Assembly: GCA_965202585.1 (NCBI GenBank)
Contig: OZ241834.1
Location: forward strand, 29,140,001 to 29,204,000
Direction: 5' to 3'
DNA from: Thalia democratica
Lineage: Eukaryota
Length of the DNA: 64,000 bases
A model generated the notes under the pieces. It was not told where the DNA came from. It did not search any database and saw only the letters and a program-made list of their open reading frames with translations. The position numbers and the translations under genes were made by a program. Shown here piece by piece: positions 24,713-57,829 of the stretch. Within the stretch, counting starts at the first letter, position 1, and each line of letters opens with the position of its first letter.

Positions 24713-25172
24713 GGGGCACAAAATTTAAATCTTCGTTGCAATTGGCGGATTAAATGACAAAAAATTCTGACTAATTTATCAAAAAGTGTAATAATTTTCT
24801 AACTTTAAAATGTGTGTAGTTACAAGAAATTTATTTTAATATTCTTAAAATTGTCATATTTAATTGCAACAGAGGTTTAAATTTATTCACACCTACTTCC
24901 TCGTAGTGTGCCCTGGTTAACCACCATGTTATTGTTGCTAAGGGGTCCCCAAATTTGTTAAAAATTAACACTAGGTTCTTAAAACAAAACTGATATATGA
25001 AGGTTAATTTCAATTATTATAGATAAACCATAACTTGTATAGAAGTAGATGAAACGTTTATAAATAGTTCTTTGTATTATCACCATAAAATTTTCTGCAC
25101 CCTCTAAAACTAGTTGTCTTTGCAACCAGTTACTTAGCAACAATTGACTTACATTGTGGGCTAAATGGTGTG
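24713..25172 (+). ncRNA. HDV-like ribozyme, unit 1
   Basis: P1 GGGGCAC/GUGCCCU (G1-U wobble), P3 ACU/AGU, L3 UCCUCGU, P1.1 CC/GG, J4/2 GCUAA with C at 25161, P2 CACACC/GGUGUG, long J1/2 and P4 hairpins. Confidence 0.85.
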
Positions 25173-25501: not shown

Positions 25502-25792
25502 TTTCGCTTGACTTATGTCATTAATCTGTCTGCGCGACAACCCTTGCGCACACAATGAATGTACAGATTTTTTAATTAAAATATTTTTAAGACATACTTG
25601 TGAATATTGTTTGAGTTGTGGGTTTAAATCTGCTTCATGTCTGAAAGCAGACCCATTAAGTTGTAAATAATTATTTGTTACTTTATAATTGTACGTTAAT
25701 TTTTATTTTTTTTGTAAAAGTTGTAGACATACTATTGGAAAATGTTTGAGTTGTGGGTTTAAATCTGCTTCATTTTCGAAAGCAGACCCATA
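25502..25792 (+). other. Conserved hairpin cluster downstream of the ribozyme (also ~33404-33674, ~43157-43402, ~51808-52100)
   Basis: tgcgcgacatcccttgcgca hairpin and gtgggtttaaatYtgcttc..gaaagcaRacccaY hairpin in all four units. Confidence 0.7.
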
Positions 25793-31917: not shown

Positions 31918-32100
31918 TAGGGTACAAAATTTAAATTTTCGTTTCAAAGCGAGGCCGACACTAACATTATTATCAAATTAACAAAAAATATCCTAAATTT
32001 ACTCTTTCTTAATAAAGTCTCTAGTTAACAAACAAAATAATTATTTCAATGTTTTTTGGAGTTGTAATGTTTAATTTAAACTTGTTTTGATTGATGATAA
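31918..32100 (+). pseudogene. Decayed ribozyme 5' half, unit 2
   Basis: agggtacaaaatttaaat..gaggccgacactaac resembles P1 and J1/2 of the unit-4 ribozyme; no P3/L3/P1' follows. Confidence 0.65.
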
Positions 32101-32509
32101 ATTTTTGATAAAAATAAAATTGTTTAACCACATTGTTACTTGGATATGTTTGTGTATAATATGTGTTTCTTAAGGTTTGTCTATTTGTTTATTTTCGAAA
32201 TTAAGTTTTTCTTAAAACTTAAAAAGCTTGTAAGATAAAAGAAACTAAAAACGGTTGACCAAAGTTAATTGGTTTGTATAAGTATGGTCGAAAAATAATT
32301 TGTAAAAATTTTATTGTGTCTGTTTGATTAAATTACATACAAAAGTTACTGGTTGTTTGATTAATTATATTAAACAGAACACATATATATTTATGCTCTA
32401 ATATTGAATTTTATTAATTTCTAAAAGACTAGCCACTGTCAAACCAAAAGTAAGGTTTTCAAAAATGTTTAAACTAATTAGTTTAATATTAACAACATGT
32501 ATTTAATGT

Positions 32510-32949
32510 GGGGTACAAAATTTAAACCTTCGTTGCAATTGGTGGATTTCATGACAAAAAATTCTGACTAATTTATCGAAAAGTTTAATAATTTAAAATG
32601 TGTCAAGTTTACAAGTAATTTATTTTAATATTTTTAGAATTGTCATGTTTAATTGCAACAGAGGTTTAAATTTATTCACACCGCTTCCTCGTTCAGTGTA
32701 CCCTGGAAACTTTGACGTTATTGTTGCTAGGTAATCCCCAAATTTGTTAAATACTGCCCACACTAAGTTCTTATAAAAAGAATCTTAAACTTCTTGAGTT
32801 TGTCTAAAATTAATATTAACAGAAGTAAATAAAACGTTTAAAAATAGATAAAGGTTCATAATACTTTCCTTGTAAACACCAAATAATTTTCACCCTTAAA
32901 AACCAGTTACCTAGCAACAAATAAATTTTCAAAGGCTAAAGGTGTGAAT
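32510..32949 (+). ncRNA. HDV-like ribozyme, unit 2
   Basis: P1 GGGGUAC/GUACCCU, P3 GCU/AGU, L3 UCCUCGUUC (2-nt insertion), GG, J4/2 GCUAA with C at 32936, P2 AUUCACACC/GGUGUGAAU. Confidence 0.8.
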
Positions 32950-35900
32950 GTAAATATTGTATATTTATTTGTTACAATTTGAATTAGTACTCATGCCTTA
33001 CAAAATTGTATATTTGTTTATAAATATATCTGTTGTTTAATTATTAAGTTTTTTCTATTGTGTTATTGTTTTATTAATAATTATGGTTATTGTGGTTGAT
33101 ATTTTATTTTTAATTTATTAGTTTTTGTGTTGAAATTGCTGAGTTTCCCTGTAAAAAAAAGGGTTATCATTCCCTAAAAAAATGTTTATTTTTTGTAAAT
33201 GTCTTATTTTAAATTTATTAGTTTTTGTGTTGAAATTGCTGAGTTTTCCTGTAAAGAAATAGGGTTATCATTCCCTAAAAAAATGTTTATTTTTTGTAAG
33301 TTTTGTAAATATCAATTATTTCACTTGAATTATCTGAGCCTTCAAAGGTAACCCCTCAAATTGTAATATTTAAAAAATTACAAAATTTATTAGTTGTCGT
33401 TTTTTTTTCGCTCAACAAATGTCATCAACTTGTCTGCGCGACATCCCTTGCGCACACAATGAGTTGTATTATTTTATTATTATTGATTTATTATTTTTAT
33501 TAATATTTTGATAAAATAGTTACAGTAGCGTTACTTATACAGTTGGCATCACCATGAATTGTAATGCAAAAATAATTGTACTTGTATCATTTTTATGAAT
33601 TTTTTTAAGACGCACTTTTGGAAATGTTTGAATAGTGGGTTTAAATTTGCTTCACATTTGAAAGCAAACCCACTTAAATTGTACATAATTTACATTTGTT
33701 TTTATTCTGTTGTCTTATATTTTTGAATACTGGAAACTATGCGAAGTTCTTTCTGTTCAAGGGTTTGTAAATCCCCTAATTCAAAGATTTATATTACATT
33801 TACATTAATTGTATATATTGTATAATTTTTTTTTTGAAAATTGGTTGATGTTTTCTTTACAATATTCTAATACCAAAACACTTAGTTATTACAGACCCTT
33901 AAAATTACTTAAATTAAGCCGAGTAACATAATAACTTTTTAAGAAATGAGAAAAATAATTTTAAATATTAACACATGGTCTTAAGCTAAATTAATAAAAC
34001 TGAGGAACCAACATTTTCAAAAACCTGATGTAAATTTGCACAGAAACTTTATTTAAATGTCATGGATACAGTTCAACATAAAAAAGAGTAAGATATCGAT
34101 ATCTCTCTTTGTATTTTCAATTAGCGGTTTTTATTTGCTTTGTGCTTGTGTTAATTTTTTTCTTCGCCTAAAAAGAACTTTTGTTCTCTTGAGTTCTTAT
34201 AAAAATTGCTCTGTTTGTAATATTTGTACAGATATTTAGTTTTTTTACATTTTGAATATTTATAGTCTATTTGTTTATTCTAATTATGGTTATCTAGTGA
34301 AAATCGCGAGGAATTGTATATTTGTAAATATTCTTAGTTGTGTTTTTTACAACAATTTTAATGTCATGATGATATTCAACATAGAAAGAGTAGAAAACAA
34401 CTACATCTTTTCAATTAAATTTTTGTTTTGTTTCGTTGACTTGTGCTCCTTGTTTTTTGTATTCGCCTAAAAAGAACTTTTGTTCGCTTGAGTTCATAAA
34501 ACTGCTCTGTTTGTAATATTTGTACAGATATTTTTTTATTATTTTTTTATATGAAAGTGTTTATCTGTGCATGTTAAGCTGTTGACTTGTAAATTTGTAC
34601 ATAAAATATTTATTTGTTTTTGAAAGACCTGAGAATGCTATCCAACATAGAAAAGTAGAAAGAAATTTCACTCGACAAATTGTATATATGACATATTTTT
34701 CTTCTTTTAATTAGTTTATTTTAATAAGAATTTTACATTTATCGTGAACAAAGCTCAATTTGAATTTAATGAACTTAGTTTACATTTTGAATTTTTATTG
34801 TCTTTTTGTGTTTATTTTAATGATCGTTATCAAGTGAAAATCGCGAGGAATTGTATATTTGTAAATATTCTTAATTTTGTGTCTTTATATTTTTAAGTGA
34901 TTATTTCAAACCGATTCTGATATTAGCAACAAAACTTTCATGACCATGAAAGTTTTATCGAAGTTTTTCATAGCTTTTGTAAATTTTTGTACAGTTGTTA
35001 CTAATTATTCGTTCTTAATGATGTACTTAAACTTTCAATGATGTACTTAAACTTTTTTGAGTCAAATATTTGACATGATATCTAAAGCCTGTATAACATA
35101 TAGAAAATCGGGAAAGACCACCCGATGTGTAAATAAACTTATATAACTGCATCATTACCAAACACTCGACAATTTTCTCTCCCCTGCTTTTGAACATCAA
35201 ATCAGTATCAAACAAGGGGGGTTTCAGAACACAGATACGCGAGCAATTTTCAGCATTTCGAAGATCAGCTTTATGCTGAGTGAGGATGCAAATTGCTAAA
35301 GGAGCCGGTTGAATTTTCTTAAAGAGGGGAATCCCGGGAAGAGGAGATGCTGACGTGTTCCCAGGTTCAGGGGAGGATCTTTTCAAGATCTGAGGAGTGA
35401 TGTCTCGCAACAGAGCAGATCCCCACAAGATCTTCATGATTGCGCCATCACAAGACCCGTCTCTTCATAGTGGGTACTTTTCCAAGTACTAACAAGTTAG
35501 TTGGTGTTATTTAGAAAATCGAATAAATTAAATTTGTTTTGAATGTTTTAAGTCTAATTCGTTTTTTTTATGAAATTTTTATTTTAAACTCAGTCTGTTT
35601 TATAACTTGAATCTTTTACACGAATTCCTGTTCGTAATGTGGTTTTAAAAAGAAAACTTGAGTTACAACATCAAGTTTTATGTAAATGCTTATTTCCATT
35701 ATTTGATTTTAGATAACAAGTTTTTATTGATTACTTTAGTTCTGTACTGACTAAGAGAGCCTTAAGAAACATTGAATAAAAATATATATTTTACAGCAAA
35801 AACTGCAACCAGAAGCAGTTGAAGTAGACAGTATGACGTCACAAACGGTATGACGTCACAAATAAGAAGGAACCAGTGGAAAGTCTGATAGACTTCAGTT

Positions 35901-39470: not shown

Positions 39471-39860
39471 GCCACTTAACCTGGAAAAACCGGAAATTTG
39501 ACAATTTAGGCTTAATAAAACCTGGATAAAACTTAAATTTGATAAACTTCGTAAAAAACTGGAATTTCGAATGAAATTTACTAAAAAATCTGAAACTTTG
39601 ACATTTTCACATGTTTAATAGTAAAATTTCGATTTGACTCAAAAAATCTATCATATAAATGAAAAAATTTGGTCATCATCAAAAAGTTTATTTTTTAACT
39701 TGAAGTAGCTTTACAATATCTTTTCGATGTTTCAATACTATTTAACACAGTTCTTACTTAAACTCTAAATTATAAATAGACCCAAAAATGTGAACTTTTA
39801 GAAACTTGAAAAATAATTAGAAAACCTAGATTTTTTATGAAAAAACTATTGTCAACCCTG
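39471..39860 (+). mobile_element. hAT-like MITE (CAGGGTTGCCAC-type ends), left end decayed
   Basis: Homologous to 48888-49233 and 57556-57829; right end gtcaaccctg; absent at the paralogous sites ~29660 and ~48040. Confidence 0.65.
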
Positions 39861-41561: not shown

Positions 41562-41745
41562 AGGGTACAAAATTTAAATTTTTGTTTCAAAGCGAAGCTG
41601 ACACTAACATTATTATCAAATTAACAACAAATATTTTAAATTTACTCTTTCTTAATAAAGTCTCTAGTTTACGAACAAAATAAATATTTCAATGTTATTA
41701 GAGTTTATTTTAAACTTGTTTTGATCGATGATAAACTTTTGAGAA
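41562..41745 (+). pseudogene. Decayed ribozyme 5' half, unit 3
   Basis: agggtacaaaatttaaat..gaagctgacactaac; core deleted. Confidence 0.65.
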
Positions 41746-42149: not shown

Positions 42150-42599
42150 GGGGTACGAAATTTAAACCTTCGTTGCAATTGGTGCATTTCATGACAAAAA
42201 ATTCTGACTAATTTATCAAAAAGTGTAATAATTTAAAATGTGTCTAGTTTACAATTAATTTATTTTAATATATGAAGAATTGTCATGTTTAATTGCAACA
42301 GAGGTTTAAATTTATTCACACCGCTTCCTCGTTCAGTGTACCCTGGTAACTTTGATGTTATTGTTGCTAGGTAACCCCCAATGTTGTTAAATACTGCCCA
42401 CACTAAGTTCTTATAAAAACTATCTTAAACTTCTTGAATTTGTCTAAAATTAATATTAACTTAAACAGAAGTAAATAAAACGTTTAAAAATGGTTTAAAT
42501 ACAGGTTCATAAAAATTTCTTTGTAAACACCAAATAATTTTCACCCTTAAAACCAGTTACCTAGCAACAAATAAATTTTCAAAGGCTAAAGGTGTGAAT
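42150..42599 (+). ncRNA. HDV-like ribozyme, unit 3
   Basis: Core as unit 2; 15-bp perfect P4 stem UUGUUGCUAGGUAAC/GUUACCUAGCAACAA; C at 42586. Confidence 0.8.
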
Positions 42600-42754
42600 G
42601 TAAATATTGTATATTTATTTGTTACAATTTGAATTAGTACTCATGCCTTACAAAATTGTATATTTGTTTATAAATATATCTGTTGTTTAATTATTAAGTT
42701 TTTTCTATTGTGTTATTGTTTTATTAATAATTATGGTTATTGTGGTTGATATTT

Positions 42755-43050
42755 TATTTTTAATTTATTAGTTTTTGTGTTGAAATTGCTGAGTTTTCCT
42801 GTAAAAAAAGGGTTATCATTCCCTAAAAAAATGTTTATTTTTTGTAAATGTCTTATTTTAAATTTATTAGTTTTTGAGTTGAAATTGCTGAGTTTTCCTG
42901 TAAAAAAAAGGGTTATCATTCCCGAAAAAAATGTTTATTTTTTGTAAATGTCTTATTTTAAATTTATTAGTTTTTGTGTTGAAATTGCTGAGTTTTCCTG
43001 TAAAAAAATAGGGTTATCATTCCCTAAAAAAATGTTTATTTTTTGTAAGT
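42755..43050 (+). repeat. ~97 bp tandem repeat, 3 copies (2 copies at ~33110-33300)
   Basis: Unit contains agggttatcattccct; single related motif in units 1 and 4. Confidence 0.85.
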
Positions 43051-46000
43051 TTTGTAAATATCAATTATTTCACTTGAATTATCTGAGCCTTCAAAGCTAA
43101 CCCCTCAAATTGTAATAATTAAAAAAATTACAAAATTTATTAGTTGTTGTTATTTATTTCGCTCAACAAATGTCATCAACTTGTCTGCGCGACATCCCTT
43201 GCGCACACAATGAATTGTATTATTTTTTTAAATATTTGTTAACATAATTACAGTAGCGTTACTTGTACAGTTGGCATCACCATGAATTGTAGAGAATAAT
43301 TAATTGTACTTTTATCATTTTTATGAATTTTTTTAAGACGCACTTGTGGAAATGTTTGAATAGTGGGTTTAAATTTGCTTCATGTTTGAAAGCAAACCCA
43401 CTTAAATTGTACATAATTTACATTTGTTTTAATTTTGTTGTCTTATATTTTTTAATACTGGAAACAATGCGAAGTTCTTTCTGTTCAAAGGTTTGTAAAT
43501 CCCCTAAGTCAAAGATTTATTTTACTTAAATTGTATATATTGTAATTTTTTTTTTGAAAATCGTTGATGTTTTCTTTACAATATTCTAAAACAAAACACT
43601 TAATTATTACAGACCCTTAAAATTACTAAAATTAAGCCTAGTATGATAATAACTTTGTAAGAAATGAGAAAAATAATTTTAAATATTAACAAATGGTCTA
43701 AAGCTCCATTAATAAAACTCTAGAAACCAACATTTTCAAAAACCTGATGTAAATTTGTACAGAAAATTTTATTAAAATGTCATGGATACAGTTCAACATA
43801 ACAAGAGCAAGATATCGATATCTCTCTTTGTATTTTCAATTAGCGGTTTTTATTTGTTTCGTCCTTGTTTTTCGTTTTCGCCTAAAAAGAACTTTTGTTC
43901 TCTTGAGTTCTTATAAAAATTGCTCTGTTTGTAATATTTGTACAGATATTTGTTTTTTTTACGTTTTGAATATTTATAGTCTATTTGTTTATTCTAATTA
44001 TGGTTATCTAGTGAAAATCGCGAGAAATTGTATATTTGTAAATATTCTTAGTTGTTTTTTTTTTATAATAATTTTAATGTCATGATGATATTCAACATAG
44101 AAAGAGTAGAAAACAACTACATCTTTTCATCTTTTCAACTTGTTTTTTTTGATTTGTGCTCCTTGTTTTTTGTATTCGCCTAAAAAGAACTTTTGTTCGC
44201 TTGAGTTCATAAAACTGCTCTGTTTGTAATATTTGTACAGATATTTAGTTTTTTGTTATTTTTGTTATAAACGTGTTTATTTGTGCATGTTAAGCTGTTG
44301 ACTTGTAAATTTGTACATAAAATATTTAGTTGTTTTTGAAAAACCTGAGAATGCTATCCAACATAGAAGAGTAGAAAGAAAATTTCACTCGACAAATTGT
44401 ATATATGACATATTTTTCTTCCTTTAATTAGTTTATATTGATAAGAATTTTACTTATGTCGTGAATCATGCTCAATTTGAATTTAATGAACTTCGTTTAC
44501 ATTTTGAATTTTTATTGTCTTTTTGTGTTTATTTTAATGATCGTTATCAAGTGAAAAGCGCGAGGAATTGTATATTTGTAAATATTCTTAATTTTGTGTC
44601 TTTATATTTTTAAGTGATTATTTCAAACCGATTCTGATATTAGCAACAAAACTTTCATGACCATGAAAGTTTCATCAAAGTTTTTCATAGCTTATGTAAA
44701 TTTTTGTACAGTTTCTTATTACTTATTTGTCTTAATGATGCACTTTCAATGATGTATTTAAAATTTTTTGAGTCAAATATTTGACATGATGTCTAAAGCC
44801 TGTAGAACATATAGAAAATTGGGAAAGACCACCCGATGTGTAAATAAATTTATGTAACTGCATCATTACCAAACACCTGAAAATTTTCCCGCCCCTGTGT
44901 TTAAACATCAAACCAGTATCAAACAAGGGGATTTTAGAACACAGATGCGCGAGAAACTTTTAGTATTTTAAAGATCATGCTGAGTAAGATGCAAGTTGCT
45001 GAAGGAGCCGCTTGAACCTTGTTCTAAAAGAGGGAAATCCCGGGAAGAGGAAATGCTGACGTGTTCCCAGGTTCAGGGGAGGATCTCTTCATGACAATCT
45101 GTGGAGTGATGCCTCGCAGCAGAGCAGATCCCCCACAAGATCTTCATGATTGCGGCATCACAAGACCCGTCTCTTGTTAGTGGGTACAAAGTACAAAAAA
45201 GTTAGTTGGTGTTATTTAGAAAATCGAATTAATTAAATTTGTTTTGAATGTTTTAACTCTAATTGGTTTTCATGAAATTTTTATTTTAAACTCAATCTGT
45301 TTTATAACTTGAATCTTTGACACAAGTTTCTGTAAATAATACTGTTTTAATAAAAAAGCTTACAACATCAAATTTAATTAAACTGCTAAATTTTATTATT
45401 TAAATTAATGATTAATTTTTTGTTAACAAGTTTTTATTGATTTCTTTACTTGATTATTTATTTAAGAGCCTTAACAAATACTGATTATAAATATACTTTA
45501 ATTCACAGCAGAAACTGCAACCAGCAACGCCGCCAGTAGCAGTGGAAGTAGACATTATGACGTCACAAACGGTACAACGTCACAAATAAGAAGAAATCCG
45601 TGGGAAGTCTTGAAGACTTCAGTTGATGACGTGACTAGATCTAGATGACCTCATAAGATGTTCAGGTTGTGATGAGTTGAGGAGTCACATTAAAAGATTC
45701 GCTTGCTTTCTTACATCGAATCAACATTCAACTAAGTTGGTTAGTTGCTTTGAATTTGATTAAATAACTATTTTTGACTTGATTAGTTTTTACTTTATGA
45801 AATTACTACCAAACATCAGTCTTAAATGATTTAATTATAACTTAACAGTTATCTGCAATCCAGAACATCAGCAGATGTCCAAACAAGAAGTAAGAAGAAA
45901 TCTTTAAACGATAATTGAGAAGCCGCTGATGTAGAGCAGTACAACTCTTCACCCGAACATTGATGTCATCCCAACATTGAGATTAATTTATCAGCAAGCT

Positions 46001-48616
46001 ATTCTTCAGTTCTTTAACAGAATCAGACCTGACGAGATCTTCAAGAAGAAATGAATTCTTGAAATTCTCTGAATCATCAAAGAAAAAAAAAGGCTTCCAA
46101 TTAAGTTGGTTAGTTGATTTTATTTGAATAAATAGATAGATTAAGTTTTTTTTATTTAGTTTGTAAAAATTGCCAGTCCAATGCTATAGTTTTTTTTTTT
46201 GAAATATTTATTTATAACCAATTCGCATTGTTAAATTTTTTTGTTCAAATAATTGAATTTTGTTAGTAATCTGATGAAATCTAAGAAATATTTCGCGTAT
46301 AATTTTTTAATTAGTTAATATCAGAAATTTTTCTAAGGTTTAAATAAAAAAGTAAATTAATTCTATCGAAGTAAAGGTTATAGATATTTCATAAAAAACA
46401 AGTTTTAAGAGTTATTAATAAATTATTCACTTAGCAGGAAACTGCAATCGAGAATTACAGCGGCGAGAAAAAACTCCATTTCGGTGGAGGAAGAGCTGCT
46501 GACAAATCTTCATCGCGATGAAAAACACGTTGAGAGATCAGCGAATGCGTTGTACCGCGCGAGATCTTCAATTGGCCTTTTCTTCGTTCAAAATTAAGCT
46601 TGTGGAAAATAATAACGTGTCTCTTAATCGTGTTCAAACTAACATGAAGAAAGTTTCAACAATCAGCTCGGTTAGTTGCTTCTCAATGGTTTAGTTATTA
46701 TACAATATTCGTTTTATCAGAATGAAATTTAACATTTTGTACTTGGTTAAAACTATAATTGTGTGTTATCCAACCTGCTTATGTTTTTTATATGTATATT
46801 ATTTTTAAACAAAAGTTTTTGTAATCTTTTCATACTGTAAATAGTTTTTTGTAAAAGCAATTTATTTGATAGTTATGTTGAAAGCAAAACCTTAAAAAAT
46901 TAAAGCTGAGAAAAAGCACAGTTTCTGAACTTGAATAAATTTGATATTTCTTTCGTTTGCTATTAAAAATAAGTACATAACTTCTATTGAAATAAAAATA
47001 ATAAATGTTAATAAAAAAAAATTTCCAGATACACTGCAACATAGTCCAAGCCAGGACATTGAACTGATACAATCCCATTTCTGTGTAGATTTGGAGGTGT
47101 GGTCCAAGCCAGGACATGAAATTGAGACAATCCAATTTTTGAGTGGATTCGGAGAAGTGGTCCAAGCCAGGACAAGTTGCAACAAATTAAATATCGAGTT
47201 GACATTATGTTGATTACATTCTATTTTTATTAATAAATTTATGAAATAAATATCAATCGCGTTGTATTATATTAGAGTTAATTTATACCACTATATCAAA
47301 TAGACTAAATAGGAATTTATACTTACAATTTGGACTAGGAAATGTTTTAGGTGTCAAAATGTTAAAAACCGAAAAAAATTAATTAAGATCTTAATCCTTG
47401 GTTAGAAACAATTTCCTAATACCACCAAAAGTTTGAAATTTCTTAACTTTTGGCTTTTTTGCGAACTTGACTTGTTACAGCGTCTCGCACACAATTTTAT
47501 ACTATTTGAAAGAAACTTCAAAGTAAGGCTAATTATAATTTTAGTTAATTTGATTTTCCTTTTCAGTACTTGGAAGTTGTCACTAGAGAAAATTTGATAT
47601 TTTCTGCTTGTCATTATCATAATTTAAAAAAAGTGCCAAGTCTCAAAAGTTCTAGTGTCATTGGTAAAATGCAAGATACTGTGAAAGAACCTTTCACTGT
47701 TTATTTAAAGAGCTTGTGACAAGGCAAACAAAATTTTCAGAGATCGTATAACCATCATTTTCAGTCTCGTGAAAACAGTAAAACAAACAACAGAATATTA
47801 GGTCAAGTTAGTATGAGCAGTTTTATGAGACTTGATGCCTGTGACAAAAAATTATTTTTAAAAATGCCACATAAATCTGGTAGACATTTGTCCTGAACTT
47901 GGTGTGATAGTGAACTTTCGATCAATTAATTTTGTGATTCTCAGTATATATTTTTAATTGTTGCGGCTCCTTGAATCTTCGCGTTTAGGTTTTAGCATGT
48001 CTGAAAGTTATTAAAATAAAAGTACGCAACCTTTTTTTTACTGTTCACTGAAAACTGCTTAAGGTTAAATGTCATTTATGTTTGACACTAAATATCATCC
48101 CATTGGGTTGGAACTGACTTGGCAACCAGTTCTGTAAAAACTTTGCCTCTGCAAGGCCTTAAATTCAGAATCACTAGTGCGGAAATCAAAACAAAAAGTC
48201 TGGACTGTCTGGTTTTTGCAACGTACCTGTTTGTCTTGATACTTCTCTTAAAATACGGACAAGTTTTTTGAATTTAAATCTAGTGTTTTCCCTGAAATAC
48301 TGTTATTAATAAAGCATTTCTTATTTTGTTAGGGTTTTTGGATACCTAAGCTTGAACAGAAGTAAGTATTTTCAGTTTTTTATTATCTTCTCTCAAATCC
48401 GGCTACCTTAATTCAAGTTGTGTTGGTTTGTTTTTTGACCCAAACAATTCCAAAATTTAATACTATAAGTCTTATTGGTGCATTTCTAGATCCGAACAGC
48501 ATTTTATAAGTAATGACCAACGGGCCACACAATGAAAATCAGATAGTATAATCTTTTAATAAAAAAGTTTTAGTCAAATAATTTTATGGCAAGCAGTACT
48601 GTGAACTACCAATTAA

Positions 48617-49563
48617 GGGCATAGGGGGGGGGGTCCGAGTCCAACATTGTTTTTACAACTTTAATAAAACGTATGAACCGTAAGTTTTTCAAGGTCAATT
48701 TTCTCAGAAATTAAAAAAAATCTCTAAAAACCTATCTTCTTCTTCGATTTTTGAGATAGAGACCTCAAATTTTTAGGAAACGTTCCTTTTACAGATTAAA
48801 AGACTCTGAATGTTGGAATTATAAAATGTTATCAAATAAAAATTTTAGATAAAAATAACAAAAAAAAAGATGTTTTTTTTAATAAAACAGGGTTGCCACT
48901 TTACCTGGAAATTGACAATTTAGACAAAATAACCTGGAATTTAAGAAATTTTTAAAAAAACCTTGAAAAACTGGAATTTTTAAGAATTTTAGCATGTTCA
49001 GTAGTAAAACTTCAGTTTGACTCAAAAAATTTATCATATATATGAAAAATTTTTGTCATCACCAAAAATTTTTTTATTAGAAAAACACATTTTAAGTAGC
49101 TTTACATACAATTTAACACAGTTTCTTACCTTAAATTTAACTTTAAACTAAAAATAGATCTAAAAAATGTACTTTTAAAAACCTGGAAGAAAGTTGAGAA
49201 ACCTCGGAAAATTTTGAAAAAATGAGTGGCAATTAGATGGTTTTTTTAATAAAAATTTACTTTTCAAAATTAAAAAAATTCCTGCATTGAATCTTTTTAA
49301 AATTTAATAATACACTTTCTGTGAAAGTTTGAAGAAGATTGCATAAACCATGAAGGAGGAGATAGATTTTTAGTGAAATGGTCTTTTTTTAGCGTTTTTA
49401 GTTTGCGCCTTCCATTAGGAACCTATTTAAGTCACCGAATTTGATTGCTCATATCTGAAAAAATACTTTGTATTTTTTCAAGCAGTTAAAAATGTCTGGT
49501 TGCTCAGATATAACTGTAAAATAAGATAAATTTGTAAAAACCAAGGTGGACCCCCCTATGCCC
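48617..49563. mobile_element. Kolobok-like non-autonomous DNA transposon
   Basis: TIR GGGCATAGGGGGG..GGTCC / GGACCCCCCTATGCCC, perfect TTAA on both sides, purine-purine termini. Confidence 0.8.
48888..49233 (+). mobile_element. hAT-like MITE nested in the Kolobok-like element
   Basis: Left CAGGGTTGCCAC, right GTGGCAA (truncated). Confidence 0.7.
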
Positions 49564-50295
49564 TTAAATAAATACTGGAATTTGACTATTTAGGCAAAAA
49601 GCTTCAATTAAATTAAAAACAACCTACAATTTCTACATATAAAGAAACGGAATTTAGATTAAATACTAAAATCTATCATAAAGTTAAGATATTCTCTGTG
49701 TCATCTAATTTTTTATATTATAAATAACATATAAAACAGGTTTACAGTATCTTTTTAATGTTGTTATACTTATGAGGCCTATAAATTTTTTATCTTCAAT
49801 TTACTTGATACTATTTATGATCTGAAAAACTTTTTTTTAATTCTGCAAGAAATTTACAAAAAACATTTTGCAACCCTGTAAATATACCATTGGTAACATG
49901 TACGCTTATTTTAAACTAACTTGAGTGATTAATGCAAATATATATAAGGACGTGTCCTAAAATGACCAACAACAATGAATTAGTAAATATCAAGTTAAGA
50001 ATCTAGATGCAAACTTTTACAACAGAAACTAATTTTAATGCTTTAAAACACACTTCTTTCTAACTAAAAAGTGCATTGCAGGGCACAGGCTTTTCAGGTT
50101 GATTTGTAAGGAACTTTTTTAGAAGATGCAAAGTTCCTATCAAGTAGCCGTGAATGGGGTCAATCGGCACCAGTAGATCGTCCAAAAACGTGTCGAATTT
50201 TGCACCTGCAACATTTGCGACCCTTCAACTTGTAAAAATCCGCTGCAACGAAGTCTCGGAAATTCTTCTTTCTACTGATTGCATCATCAGGACGT

Positions 50296-50478
50296 CGTTC
50301 CGCTTGAAAACAACACTGTAACCGTTCCGCTTGAAAACAACACTGTAACCGTTCCGCTTGAAAACAACACTGTAACCGTTCCGCTTGAAAACAACACTGT
50401 AACCGTTCCGCTTGAAAACACTGCAACCGTTCCGCTTGAAAACACTGCAACCGTTCCGCTTGAAAGCACCGCAACCGT
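50296..50478 (+). repeat. 27/24-bp minisatellite (cgttccgcttgaaaac[aac]actgYaac, about 7 copies) inside unit-4 exon A
   Basis: Explains the repetitive ORFs at 50160-50498; single copy ccgttccactagaaaacactg in paralogous exons. Confidence 0.92.
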
Positions 50479-50895
50479 TTGAGGACGCCAACTGCCAAAC
50501 TGATACTAAACTAGAGACTCAACACTGAAACTAACTAGTTAGCTGTTCAACAACATATTTAAACTTTAATTTGTTTATTTTACAACACAAAAAACATTAA
50601 TATTAAAAAGAGTTTTACTTATTTAGTTTAATCTTAAGTAATGAATTTGGAATTGGTGTCTTGTTTACTGAACGAAAACTTTTTCTAATTTGAGTTATAA
50701 ACAATTAGTTTCATTATTAAACTTATTGTTCTTAATATATACATTTCAATATTTGGTAACTTGTTTTTTAGAAGTTTATATTTAACCAGAGTTTTATGTC
50801 AGTTAATAAAAAATGTTTTATTAACTCATGTAGGCTCAACCATAGTTTCTTAATTTGAATTTTTTTTTAATTTCTATTAAATCAAGTTCTATTGT

Positions 50896-51346
50896 GGGGC
50901 ACAAAATTTAAATCTTCGTTGCAACTGTTGAAGCTGACACTAAAATTCCTAACAAGTTAACTAAAACGATTTTTTTACTTAAATCACTTACTCCTAATAA
51001 AGTTTGCAATTGGCATATATTAATATTTTTATAATTGTCATGTTTAGTTGCAGCAGAGATTTAAATTTTATAACACCGGCTTCCTCGCAGCGTGTCCTGG
51101 GAAACTTTGATGTTATTGTTGCTAGGTAATTATGTTTAAAGCTGTCCACTTTAAGTTAACCAAAACACTGATATTAAAAGGTTCATTTAAAAAGAATATG
51201 GAGTTATATAAAGCTAAATCAAAAGTTAAACAATAATTTAGAAAAAACAGTTTCATAAAAATTTTATTTTCTCCCATCACCAAACTTTCGGGCACCCTTT
51301 TTAAACCAATTACCTAGCAACATTTCATCATAAGGCTAACGGTGTT
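50896..51346 (+). ncRNA. HDV-like ribozyme, unit 4 (most canonical)
   Basis: P1 GGGGCAC/GUGUCCU, P2 AACACCG/CGGUGUU, P3 GCU/AGC, L3 UCCUCGC, P1.1 CC/GG, J4/2 GCUAA with C at 51336. Confidence 0.9.
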
Positions 51347-54300
51347 TTGTATATATTGTATTTTTTAATATTGTTTTTTTTTAATATTGGTATGTAAAAT
51401 GAGTCCTTTGCCTTACAAAATTGTATATTTGTACATAAATGTTTTTGTTGTTTCATATATTTTTTGCTTATTATGAAATGTTAATATTTTTATTGTTAGT
51501 CAAGTTGTCATGGTTAATAAACGGGTTCTCAGTCCCTGCAAAATTCTGTCGTTGTACATAAAAGTGTGTTTCAATATTTTAATATGGTGATGTTTGTAGT
51601 TATTTATATTATTTGTTGTTGTGCTGAGATTTTAATTTTTTGCTAAAAATGAGCATATCACTTTTAAAAACACAGGGTTATAATTCCCTAAAAAAATTTT
51701 GTAAATATTATTGATATTTTTTTGTGTTGTTTTACTTGAATGTACTAGTTGGTAATCCCTCGAAAATATTTTACAATGTTAAATTCTTTATATTGATTGT
51801 TGTTATATTTCGCTCGACTTATGTCATTAGTCTGTCTGCGCGACATCCCTTGCGCACACAATGAATTGTATTTATTTTTTTTATAATTAATTTATAATCT
51901 TTTTGTAAAGATTTTTATTTGGAGCACTTTTGGAAAATGTTTGAATTGTGGGTTTAAATCTGCTTCATATTCGAAAGCAGACCCATTTTAATTGTACCTT
52001 AATTATTTTGTTTATTTTTTAAAGATTTCATTTGTCGCACTTTTGGAAAATGTTTGAATTTTGGGTTTAAATCTGCTTCATATCTGGAAGCAGACCCATT
52101 TAAATTGTACATTTTGTGTATTTTTTGTTGAGATGTTGTAATAAGGGCGCATGTCTGCAAAAATGTAAATATTTTAGTTGAACCTAATATTATTTCAAAG
52201 CGCTAAGCAATTGTACCTTTGATATTTTAGAATAAAATATCTGTTGAGAATAAATTTTTATGTTATTAAAAATTTTGTACAGAATTTTTTGTGAAACACG
52301 TATACAAAATTCGACTGAAAAGATGAGATTTTAAAAAATCCATCTTTTTAATGTACAGTATTTTGTTTCTATTATAGTTGAATTTAATTTTGTTGTCTTG
52401 TTTTTTGAATGCTGATAAGTATGTGAAGTTCTTTCTGTACAAGGTTTATAGATCCCCTATTTTAATGATTTATACTAAATTGTATATATTATAAATGATT
52501 ATTTTTTTTGAAAAATGTTGATTATTCCCTTACAATATTCTAAAAACAAAAGACCAAATTATTATAACTGCGTTTTATATAATTTCCTGCAAAGAATGGC
52601 AAACGATTTATCAAGTATTTCAAAACACAAACTTGGATATATATGTTATAAAACTTAATTTGTATGTACAATAAAACTGAAGAATCAGTATTTTTCATAA
52701 CGTTGTTGTATATTTGTACAGAAAGTTTTGTTTTCATTTAATATCGTGATACAAATAACCATAAAAAGAGAAGAAAGAAACATCTATTCTTTGTTTATTT
52801 TTCTTTGTATTTGATAATTTTTTTTTGTAAAGAACTTTTTGTTCGCTTATTGGTTCACAAGAAGTTTGTTCTATTTGTAAATTTGTACAGATATTTTTGT
52901 ATTGTTCATATATATTTTTGTATTTTGTAGAAGAAAAAAAAAACCATCTCTTTGTTTTTTTTTTTCTTGTTTTCTTATGACTTCTCTAAACCTACTTGTC
53001 CGCTTATAGATATTGGCTCTTTTGTAATATTTGTACATATTTTATTTTCTCATAAAAAACGTGTTTTTCTGCGCATAAATGCTTTTGAAACCGCGAAAGT
53101 TTTGAAAAAATATAAATTATTTACATGCTGAACTTAAGTTTAAAACCACCTAGAGTTTAAGTTTTGTTGAATTTACACTGAAAATATCTATTTGAATAAT
53201 TAAATTATTTTAAATTTACAAAACGTTTGGAAACTAAAATTTAGAAATGTAGTATCCTATCAAAGTATTATTTTAAAATTACTATCTTTTTAATTCAACG
53301 GGTATTCAATTAGAAATTAAAAACATATTTATCACATTATTAACAGCTTTTATAAAGGGGATTTTCAGTATATTTGTAATTTGTGTGTAAATTTGTAAAT
53401 AACTTTGTTTTATTATTTACGTCTAGAAAAAGTAACAGCCCACCATAAAAGAGTAGAAAAATCAGTTCTCTCTTTGTTGTAAATATTGTGTTTATCTTAG
53501 TTTTTACTATTTTATTTTATCCTGAATTTAATGTACTTGTAGTGAATGCATATTAATTTTGTTTACTTATATTGAGTTTTTATTGTGTTTTTGTTTATTT
53601 TATTAATTGTTATCAAGATGATAATCGTGAGAAATTGTATAAATGTAAATCTATTAAAATAAGTTCTTTACATCCCAGTAAATTGAGCGTTCTTTTGAAA
53701 TTAAGGCAAATAACTGTATATTTGTAAATATAATTAATTATGTGTTTTTATTTCTCCGTGTTTTTATTACAAACCTAGTCCTTGGATTGCAAAAAACTTT
53801 CATAACCATGAAAGTTTCATCAAACTTTTTGATTTTTTTTAAATATTGTACATATTTTTTGATTTGAATGATGCAGTATTTGAACATTTTAACTTCGAGT
53901 TGAATTCTTTAAGTTTTTATGAAACAACTTTGAAAACAAAAAAAAAACTCTTATAACTGCACCATTATTTGATTCGTCACCCTTGAATTTCAAGATCTAG
54001 TTTCAAACAAGGGAATTTCAGAACTCTTCCACAGAAAGTTCAGTATTTCGAAGATCAAATCTATACTGAATGAAGATGCAGCAACTTGCTCAAGGAGCTG
54101 ATCCTCAATGGCCTGTGGGAGAGGAGACACCGACGGAAGTTTCCTCAGAACTCCGGAGAACAGCAAGTTTGTGATAACGTGCCAGAAGTCTGTGGCGTCA
54201 AAAGACTTGTCTCTTAACAGCGGATCAAGCACATGTAAGTTGGTTGTTTTCCTTAAAAAATCAGAAATATAACATTGGTTATTAAATATTGAAAGTGAAG

Positions 54301-56906
54301 TAAAATATTTAAAAAATAAGTTTGTAATCAATAATTTATCAACTTTTAGTATTATTTTAAAATCAACCCGTTTGAAATTATTTTACTGTAACACGAAATA
54401 ATGTACAAAATCATGTTATAATGGAAAAAAAATTAGGCATTGTAATTAACTATAGTGCTACATTTCTATTGGAGCTATAAACTTATCGAAAATTTTTAAT
54501 AATCGTATAAATAGGTATTTATAGTTCATAAAAGTTATAGCAAACCTTGAGAAAAATTTGAGTGGTTAATTGATTAAAATTCTACAGCAAAAAAACTGCA
54601 TCCAACACCAACAACAGTGGAAAGAGACCGAGTGACGTCATCAAAGCAAGCAAAACGGTATGACGTCACATTAAAGCTTAAGGAAGTCAGCGGAGAGCTT
54701 GATAGACCCGAAATGGTTTCAGATAATGTTTCGAAGGTTTTGAGATAAGTTTGATGAAACTCAGAGACTCGCCGCAACAAAGCTTTTATTCTGAGCAAGT
54801 TGTTAGTGATTGTGTAAATATTTGTTCTTTTTAGAGATGCTGTAAAACAAGCTTAAAAGATTTTTAAGTCAATATTTTTTTAACAGGATATCGCGATCAA
54901 GAAGAACATCAGAAGAAGTGGAAAAATCTCTGAAGGATTGAAGATGAGTAGCCTGATGGAAATCATCCGAAGTTTCAAGAACATTTCAATGTGAATGAGC
55001 AGACCAGGACGAAGGTGAAGGGCCGTGATGCAGTTCATTGGCACTTCACGGGAATCAGATCTCCGAAAAAGATGTGTTCCTGGTCATAAATGTAGGAAAG
55101 AGTTGCTTCGTTATGCTTCCAGTTTAATATCATTCCACCAACCAACTTGGTTAGTTGCATTTATTAAACGAATAATTTAAAATTCTTTTATTTTGTCTTA
55201 AAATATTGACCGGTTCGATGTTAAAAGTATGTTTTTTTGAATATATATTTATAATCAATTTGCGCTGATTAAAATACATAACTTTGTATCCAATTAGTAT
55301 TTCTAGTATTTTCATGCTGCAATTTGTTTAGTGTTTACTTTATTTGTATAAACATAAATAAAAACTAAATGTGACAAAAATCTACACAATTTCTGAATTA
55401 TAGTTAACAGTTTCTATGTTGAAAATGAGCGAATATTTTCTATCGAAGTAATAAAACTATCATGAACATTAAATTTTGAAGTATCATAAGTAATTATAAA
55501 CATAAACAGGAAACTGCGATCAGCAACAGCAGCAGATGTCATCAAAAGAAAATAATCTTGCATGAAAGAGGAACTGCTGTGTTAATTCTTCATGCAAGAT
55601 CATTCAAAAGCAGATCATCAAAAGGTGAACGGAGCGTCATCACTGGAGCTGGTGGAGAAGTTTGGAGAGATCATGGATAACGAGATCTTCCACTGATGAT
55701 GATTTCCTGTACATATGCAGATGGTAGGAAAACATGGCTTCCTACAATGTTCTCTCTGTTAAGCAAACTTGAACAATCAACTCGGTTGGTTCTTAATTAT
55801 TACATTTTATCGTTTTACCAATGTAAAATTGATCATTGGGTTTTTGGGTAAAAGGATAAAAGTATGTTATATAGTATTTGTATGTTTATACAAGTATAGT
55901 GCATTTAAGCAAAAGTGTTTCTAATAAACTCTTTAAAAAAATTTTGCTCAAAAGAATTTTGTATAATACTTTCGAATGGACATCTTGTAAGCATAAACTG
56001 AGAAAAGTCTGCATGCATCTGAGTTAACTAATAAATACATGTTTCTATCGTTTGCAAATAAACACAAGTACACAAATTTAATCGTAATAAAATCAAAATA
56101 TTGTTTTCTAGTTTGTAATATCAACATAATTCAACAGATACACTGCAAGGATCGTCCGAGCCAGGAGGGCGAGTTGCCAGGAGGGTGAGACAATCCTGTT
56201 TCTGTGTGGATTTGGAGAAGTGGTCCAAGCCAGGAGGATGAGTGAATTGCAACTACATCAGTTGATATTTTCATATACTTGATTTTTTTTCTATTCACAA
56301 TAAAATATAATAATGTATATTTGTCGAGTTATTTTTATTTAGTTTAATAACTATTTTCATATGTTCAAATACCGGACTGCCAAGAATAAACAAATCTACA
56401 ACAACTTAGTTAAATAAATTACGAGAAAGTTAAGTAACAACCTCAAAAAAACAAGATTAAATATGTAAATGCATATTGCTTACATTTTAAATACAATCAA
56501 TTACTTAATATAGTGTTTCTTAAAGCTGCCGGTACACTAGCTTAAGCTTTTCTTTTACAGAATGAATACGTATAAAATAAATAAATAGTAAATTAAGTAA
56601 GTAATAAAAATGATTTTAGTCAGTACTTACTAAGCTTAGTTATGACAATAATAGCTAAATTAGCTACATTGTATTTGAAGATGTGTATAGAAAATAAAAA
56701 TTTATGTAATGAATTGTAGTATTCACAAATTAAGACTGAGCTGATTAGAAATTCGGAATGATTATAAAATATGTTATAAAATGTTTTTAATTTTTCTTTT
56801 ATTTAAAGTCGTTTGTAAATGTCATTTATGATGAAATAAAATTAGTATGCTGTTTTTAAATTAAACAAAATATTATGTTGAAGTTAACAAATAAAAATCT
56901 AAAGTC

Positions 56907-57555: not shown

Positions 57556-57829
57556 CAGGGTGGTCACTAAACCTTGAATTTAATTTTTTTTGAGAAAATA
57601 AAACCTGGAATTCTAAACAAAAATCACAGACACCCTGGAATTTTAAACAATCTATCATATAAATAAAAATAATCTTATAAAAAAAACATTTAAAGTAGCT
57701 TTACAGTATCTTTTCAATTTTTTTATACTACTAAACAGTTTTTAGACTTAAATTATAACTAAAAATAGACCCAAAACTATGTACTTTCAAAAACCCGGAA
57801 GAATTTTTTAAAAACCGGTGGCAACCTTA
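57556..57829 (+). mobile_element. hAT-like MITE, third copy
   Basis: cagggtggtcac..gtggcaacctta; internal aacctggaa repeats and ttaaagtagcttt shared with the other copies. Confidence 0.65.

Follow-up and report, generated by a model that had tools for sequence, protein, structure and literature searches.

Does a 451-nt stretch of the Thalia democratica genome (positions 50896–51346, + strand) encode an HDV-like self-cleaving ribozyme whose core is split by two long insertions, and what kind of RNA would such a ribozyme serve? We addressed this question in the window, the whole stretch of 64,000 nucleotides that was analyzed, which has a G+C content of about 25% and is without long open reading frames (ORFs).

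A nested double pseudoknot interrupted by two long insertions

Read directly from the sequence, the 451-nt region contains the full HDV-like nested double pseudoknot (Table 1). The element order P1-J1/2-P2-P3-L3-P3'-P1'-P1.1-P4-J4/2-P2' is present in four copies in the window, referred to here as A, B, C, and E, the last being the region at 50896–51346. The first-pass annotation had listed all elements of the pseudoknot in this order, and our direct reading recovered each of them at its position. P1 is a 7-bp helix with two G•U pairs, one of which, the wobble G50896•U51098 at the base of P1, lies at the predicted cleavage site and has an equivalent G1•U in copies A, B, and C. The duplex energies are −9.1 kcal/mol for P1 and −8.5 kcal/mol for P2. 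The topology is shared with the genomic HDV ribozyme, which likewise has the G1•U wobble at the cleavage site, an L3 whose first seven nucleotides are UCCUCGC, two C-G pairs in P1.1, and a J4/2 of the form G-C-N-A-A. Fold and core are canonical, and the candidate belongs to a known ribozyme class, not to a new one.

Table 1. Coordinates of the candidate ribozyme, its paralogs, and associated features in the window
Feature	Position	Strand	Sequence	Remarks
P1, 5' strand	50896–50902	+	GGGGCAC	Predicted cleavage 5' of G50896
P1, 3' strand	51092–51098	+	GUGUCCU	Seven of seven positions pair with 50896–50902
P2, 5' strand	51072–51078	+	AACACCG	Recovered in the whole-RNA MFE fold
P2, 3' strand	51340–51346	+	CGGUGUU	Pairs with 51072–51078; recovered in the MFE fold
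P3	51079–51081/51089–51091	+	GCU/AGC	Encloses L3
L3	51082–51088	+	UCCUCGC	UCCUCG invariant in four of four copies
P1.1	C51083/C51084 with G51100/G51099	+		C residues of L3 pair with G residues right after the P1 3' strand
J4/2	51335–51339	+	GCUAA	Putative catalytic C51336
P1.2 domain in J1/2, 169 nt	50903–51071	+		Closing helix 50903–50926/51046–51069
P4 domain, 234 nt	51101–51334	+		Basal helix 51105–51112/51326–51334; second helix ~51117–51131/51308–51322
Paralog A	24713–25172	+	P1 GGGGCAC/GUGCCCU; P2 CACACC/GGUGUG; P3 ACU/AGU; L3 UCCUCGU	C25161
Paralog B	32510–32948	+	P1 GGGGUAC/GUACCCU; P2 UUCACACC/GGUGUGAA; P3 GCU/AGU; L3 UCCUCGUUC	9-nt L3
Paralog C	42150–42598	+		Core identical to that of B (9-nt L3)
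Decayed E-type remnant (B')	31919–32090	+		G1 mutated; P1.2 5' arm recognizable; without L3/P1'/P1.1 core
Twin E-type remnant (C')	~41562–41720			P1/P1.2 5' arm recognizable; G1 and core lost
Transcribed stretch in run X3	50908–54234	+		Ends at splice donor CACAU/GUAAGU
GC-rich block	51834–51866; ~25526–25560, 33431–33465, 43183–43217			

Descriptor searches, chance controls, and Rfam models

A permissive descriptor of the HDV topology gave 0.53 matches per shuffled 64-kb window, and at this rate the bare topology is not significant. One spurious match to the permissive descriptor was observed in the window itself (32264–32929); it lies in AT-rich DNA, its helices consist of A-T pairs only, and its L3 reads ACCUUCG. 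With a strict descriptor, in which L3 has to start with UCCUCG, there were no matches in 100 dinucleotide shuffles versus four in the real window, all on the + strand, which correspond to copies A (24713), B (32510), C (42150), and E (50896). As a further comparison, we took 120 metagenome loci in which the central motif (L3, P3', P1', and GG) occurs by chance. None of these loci is homologous to the candidate, and they serve as a negative control only; in none of the 120 was the motif accompanied by a matching P1, P2, and J4/2.

No HDV-type match was returned by Rfam, either for the whole window at the gathering threshold or for 551 nt and the 71-nt core at E ≤ 10, the families concerned being HDV_ribozyme, CPEB3, drz-Agam, drz-Bflo, and others. 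The sole match in those scans was noise (mir-723). This result is expected given the 169-nt and 234-nt insertions, and it bears on membership in the curated families, not on the fold. It also agrees with the first-pass annotation, which had anticipated that inserts of such length would probably escape length-limited searches: the Rfam models are blind to 50896–51346.

Base pairing is maintained across four diverged copies

Homology among the four copies spans their full length and extends to the inserts; each copy belongs to one of the ~9–10-kb units of a tandem segmental duplication. The B and C units are 85–87% identical, and identity is ~70% in all comparisons of A or E with B/C and of A with E, so that comparisons among the four copies draw on only three independent lineages. 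Invariant in four of four copies are the G1•U pair, the P1.1 pairs, the first six nucleotides of L3, and GGCUAA at J4/2; in the two peripheral domains, the closing helices are likewise invariant for the most part. Copy E is the most canonical one. In copy A, a single extra U separates P2 from P3 and J4/2 is longer, and B and C have the 9-nt L3, so activity need not extend to all copies.

Compensatory changes were found in P1, P1.2, P2, P3, and P4. Position 5 of P1 is C-G in A and E versus U-A in B and C, a P2 pair is C-G versus A-U, and a P3 pair appears as A-U, G•U, or G-C. In P1.2, two pairs covary (U-A, U•G, or C-G in one; U-A versus C-G in the other), and no pair of the closing helix is broken. 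Double-sided changes affect four pairs of P4, of which three are in the basal helix and the one in the second helix is G-C versus A-U. Altogether, 15 substitutions over 51 core and closing-helix pairs break a single, terminal pair, compared with 10.6 expected; when the 15 substitutions were placed at random, none of 200,000 simulations left one broken pair or fewer (P < 5e-6). These data reveal selection on base pairing in the core and in both peripheral domains.

The covariation also decides on a further alternative, that AT-rich inverted repeats happened to satisfy a permissive descriptor. Such a chance resemblance would be in keeping with the rate of about one-half match per shuffled window, with the spurious match at 32264, and with the lack of an Rfam match, but it leaves unexplained four homologous copies with compensatory changes around an invariant core, as well as the outcome of the shuffles (0 of 100), the motif carriers (0 of 120), and the simulations. 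We regard it as exceedingly improbable, and the paralog covariation effectively refutes it.

The two decayed E-type remnants lie ~600 nt upstream of the intact copies B and C, which suggests an older local duplication of which one copy has been lost since. Because these remnants have lost the core, copies evidently can decay locally; youth alone does not account for the four intact cores, which are being maintained. Conservation also reaches into the flanks (~200 nt upstream and blocks downstream), and thus being conserved does not by itself single out the ribozyme. Despite an overall identity of ~70%, A and E match letter for letter over 32 nt, from −3 to +29.

The insertions form stable domains, and P1.2 joins P1 and P2 by short linkers

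The first-pass annotation had described J1/2 as a hairpin of ~170 nt and P4 as one of ~235 nt; both are indeed closed domains, of 169 and 234 nt. The closing helix of P1.2 comprises 24 bp with one C•A mismatch. It begins directly after P1 (0-nt linker), and a 2-nt linker, AU, precedes P2. Across the copies, the P1.2 domain measures 160–169 nt, with the helix starting 0–1 nt after P1 and ending 1–3 nt before P2. Compared with dinucleotide shuffles, the fold of J1/2 has a z score of −3.70 (0 of 200 shuffles were equally stable), that of P4 one of −4.85, and that of the whole 451 nt one of −4.77. Plain nested MFE folding of all 451 nt recovered P1.2, P2, and P4 unaided and left GGGGCAC unpaired, as is expected of a pseudoknot partner.

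A stable short-linker helix in J1/2 characterizes the large HDV-like ribozymes of the drz-Agam-2 type, and the candidate has such a helix; an extended P2 of ~12 bp, also typical of them, is absent, as P2 here has 6–8 bp. In drz-Agam-2-1 of Anopheles gambiae, a P1.2 "pinching" P1 and P2 accelerates cleavage up to ~1000-fold (PMC4908430, Webb et al. 2016). Like drz-Agam-2-1, the candidate combines a canonical core with a stable base-paired P1.2 in J1/2 and very short linkers (PMC4908430). It differs in its shorter P2 (12 bp in drz-Agam-2-1), in a P1.2 of 160–169 nt, and in a P4 domain of ~230 nt; the two sequences are not similar, and the drz-Agam models of Rfam did not match. By analogy, the P1.2 helix may draw P1 and P2 together via the very short linkers and so aid folding of the core.

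Long J1/2 sequences are also known from the R2 elements of silkmoths, whose HDV-like ribozymes accommodate J1/2 loops of 216–498 nt and in part depend on them; their cleavage has been demonstrated and is abolished by a C-to-U change at the J4/2 cytidine (PMC3774820, Eickbush et al. 2013). Relative to the rating in the first-pass annotation, the architecture is less unusual: both a structured J1/2 and J1/2 loops of 216–498 nt had already been published. The likeness to the R2 ribozymes of silkmoths and other arthropods lies in the very long J1/2, and after cleavage an R2 ribozyme is retained as the 5' end of the downstream RNA. R2 ribozymes are located at 28S rDNA/R2 junctions, with 28S sequence in P1 and a reverse transcriptase (RT) ORF following, and those of silkmoths have no P4. 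The candidate, in contrast, has neither rRNA nor RT, possesses a large conserved P4, and was duplicated at the DNA level.

Two further members of the class are small. The HDV ribozyme itself, ~85 nt long, combines a 2-nt J1/2 with a short P4; its role is to process the multimers that arise by rolling-circle replication of a circular RNA genome. The mammalian CPEB3 ribozyme is minimal (~68 nt) and single-copy and lies in an intron of a protein-coding gene. Like CPEB3, the candidate apparently lies in a transcription unit of the cell and not of a transposon; it differs from CPEB3 in heading a stable RNA and forming a tandem family. P4 is highly variable among HDV-like ribozymes.

A spliced + strand transcript begins close to the predicted cleavage site

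We compared four public runs (X1–X4) over 48600–54500 in the form of assembled contigs, a type of data in which coverage holes prove nothing and a transcription start is indistinguishable from a cleavage product. X1, X2, and X4 cover this interval evenly, as genomic DNA would. X3, a small run of unstated library type, has zero depth at 49979–50766. It contributes a mismatch-free contig of 955 nt that starts at 50908 and a 3313-nt contig that matches 51843–54234 and whose remaining 920 letters map elsewhere. The break at 54234 (CACAT/GTAAGT) is a canonical splice donor of the + strand, with its GT at 54235–54236. Moreover, the repeat-to-unique depth ratio is ~100-fold lower in X3 than in X1. 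Based on the coverage pattern, the depth ratio, and the splice donor, we read X3 as RNA-seq. The GT at which the contig departs from the genome is on the + strand, which led us to reject a minus-strand transcript.

The run index is in independent agreement, as X3 contains a share of 0.70 of the sampled words of 50700–51500 and of 0.91 of those of 50850–51650; an RNA starting at 50896–50908 predicts 0.73–0.75 and 0.92–0.94, respectively. Owing to the 32-nt identity between A and E, DNA contigs also break at 50908/50922, and the left edge of X3 is therefore only bracketed, between 50893 and 50908. A spliced + strand transcript thus seems to start at the predicted cleavage site or close to it, its left edge being no more than 12 nt away. 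Together with the paralog covariation, the invariant core, and the stable domains, this edge supports the HDV-like reading of the first-pass annotation, and we consider it probable from sequence and contig evidence that 50896–51346 is a 451-nt HDV-like self-cleaving ribozyme that heads a long spliced + strand RNA.

The same contigs would look no different if the fold were no longer, or had never been, catalytic and served as a cap-proximal 5' element, for example in stability or protein binding, with transcription starting at ~50896–50908. Large conserved peripheral domains could have a function of their own, and the atypical 9-nt L3 of B and C and the extra nucleotide at the P2/P3 junction of A would sit comfortably with a loss of catalysis. 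However, the nucleotides that are invariant are exactly those of a catalytic core (G1•U, UCCUCG of L3, P1.1, and GCUAA of J4/2), whereas the helices covary freely; furthermore, the ~200 nt upstream of G1 are conserved, as a precursor starting upstream would predict. A non-catalytic fold is accordingly improbable in our judgment, and we retain self-cleavage as the preferred explanation.

In the DNA runs X1 and X2, two contig pieces over 50908–51339 showed 0 differences from the window, whereas the adjoining contigs had 11 and 21 mismatches (2–3.5%) plus indels. This may represent constraint at the level of polymorphism or a haplotype effect, and it is not specific to the ribozyme. The locus is also present in a related organism, at ~93% identity.

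The downstream RNA and its genomic context

No ORF was recognized downstream of the ribozyme, and scans of 20 stop-free segments returned no Pfam domain above noise, RT and endonuclease included. Weak Pfam matches to Astacin, TRAP-gamma, CPL1, and zf-C4H2 had E values of 0.03–0.07, below the cut-off, and the Astacin match, the only one inspected by eye, is without the zinc-binding motif. No frame-specific conservation was detected downstream when the units were compared with one another by tblastn, and the best exon-like block contains indels whose lengths are not divisible by three. Given the lack of Pfam domains and of frame conservation and the non-triplet indels, the RNA looks non-coding or very fast-evolving. 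An R2 setting was rejected, as Rfam found no rRNA in the window.

Homology between the copies continues upstream past the cleavage site, beginning at about −220 between A and B/C and at about −170 between E and the remnants B'/C'. All four copies can be aligned at an AT-rich, TATA-like string that precedes G1 by ~110–118 nt. At ≥90% likeness, the DNA depth corresponds to a single copy. High-copy dispersed repeat pieces lie ~7 kb downstream of the ribozymes, at the unit ends (39641–39805, 49064–49191, and 57645–57794).

These features bear on the reading in which a real ribozyme processes the 5' end of a non-LTR retrotransposon that is degenerate or non-autonomous and whose old insertions were segmentally duplicated later. 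This is the usual role of HDV-like ribozymes in metazoans (R2, RTE, Baggins, L1Tc), and most animal cases are associated with such elements (PMC6765202; PMC3774820). The piece of a dispersed, very high-copy repeat that closes each unit, ~7 kb downstream, would fit, as would the lack of a host coding function downstream. Retrotransposed copies, though, would begin at G1, whereas here ~170–220 nt of upstream homology is shared between copies, as searched within the window. This homology, together with the absence of an ORF or of an RT in the 20 stop-free segments, makes a retrotransposon 5' end unlikely; the missing endonuclease and other Pfam domains in these segments and the lack of frame-specific conservation, the single-copy depth, and the splicing of the RNA at a canonical donor point in the same direction.

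We also examined an origin of both "hairpins" from MITEs, their stems being the terminal inverted repeats, and rejected it as a present-day explanation. The stems show covariation instead of sequence conservation, the DNA depth is single-copy, and the stems are present in all four ~70%-identical copies.

Very high-copy dispersed repeats occupy 48990–49800 and 53525–53721 and are present in X3 as well; fragments of the first one are found again toward the ends of the tandem units (39641–39805 and 57645–57794). The DNA contig depth relative to the neighbors is thousands-fold at 49.0–49.8 kb and hundreds-fold at 53.5–53.7 kb.

A proposed pathway and its implications

If the ribozyme is active, the following order of events can be envisaged. 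A promoter within the ~200 nt conserved before the site, possibly including the TATA-like string, would start a precursor upstream of G1. With the core assembled, C51336 and a bound Mg2+ would catalyze scission between U50895 and G50896. The capped leader would thereby be lost, and the 451-nt fold would stay as the 5' end, bearing a 5'-OH, of the downstream RNA, which would continue on the + strand unspliced to 54234 and be spliced there. Each of the four units of the tandem DNA-level duplication would have a ribozyme of its own.

What seems new is this particular family, in which two large conserved peripheral domains surround the canonical core, which is invisible to Rfam, and which heads a spliced, apparently non-coding cellular transcript of a tandem array instead of a retrotransposon. 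More tentatively, the locus could represent a cellular, non-transposon family of spliced lncRNAs in the AT-rich genome of a marine animal, with mature 5' ends that arise when a 450-nt HDV-like ribozyme cleaves itself and not by capping, a possibility that we raise with reservation. If it is true, these RNAs carry an uncapped 5'-OH buried in a pseudoknot, each tandem unit is insulated from upstream transcription, and ribozyme-defined 5' ends are in use by host genes. To our knowledge, nearly all animal HDV-like ribozymes with an assigned role serve retrotransposons, and CPEB3 and the mosquito drz ribozymes are without a clear function. In the literature on HDV-like ribozymes in tunicates, we found only a mention of R2 elements. 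The four diverged copies provide a natural covariation set for the support that P1.2 and P4 may give to the core, and the locus is both a concrete example missed by standard Rfam models and a tractable case for asking what role an uncapped, ribozyme-headed nuclear transcript has.

Other conserved and repeated sequences around the ribozymes

Each ribozyme copy is followed, after ~480 nt, by a near-invariant GC-rich block of ~45 nt with the core UGUCUGCGCGACAUCCCUUGCGCACACAAUGA (Table 1). This block is more conserved than the ribozyme and is without an Rfam match. It can form a 14-bp hairpin, which shows no covariation because nothing varies there.

Two kinds of tandem repeats flank the ribozymes. 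A minisatellite at 50296–50480, ~420–600 nt upstream of the ribozyme in copy E, is made of 27- and 24-nt units in ~7 copies and creates spurious ORFs on both strands. Downstream of the ribozymes, tandem repeats of ~100–113 nt are present at 51902–52127, 42754–43048, and 33153–33287, and their copy number differs by unit.
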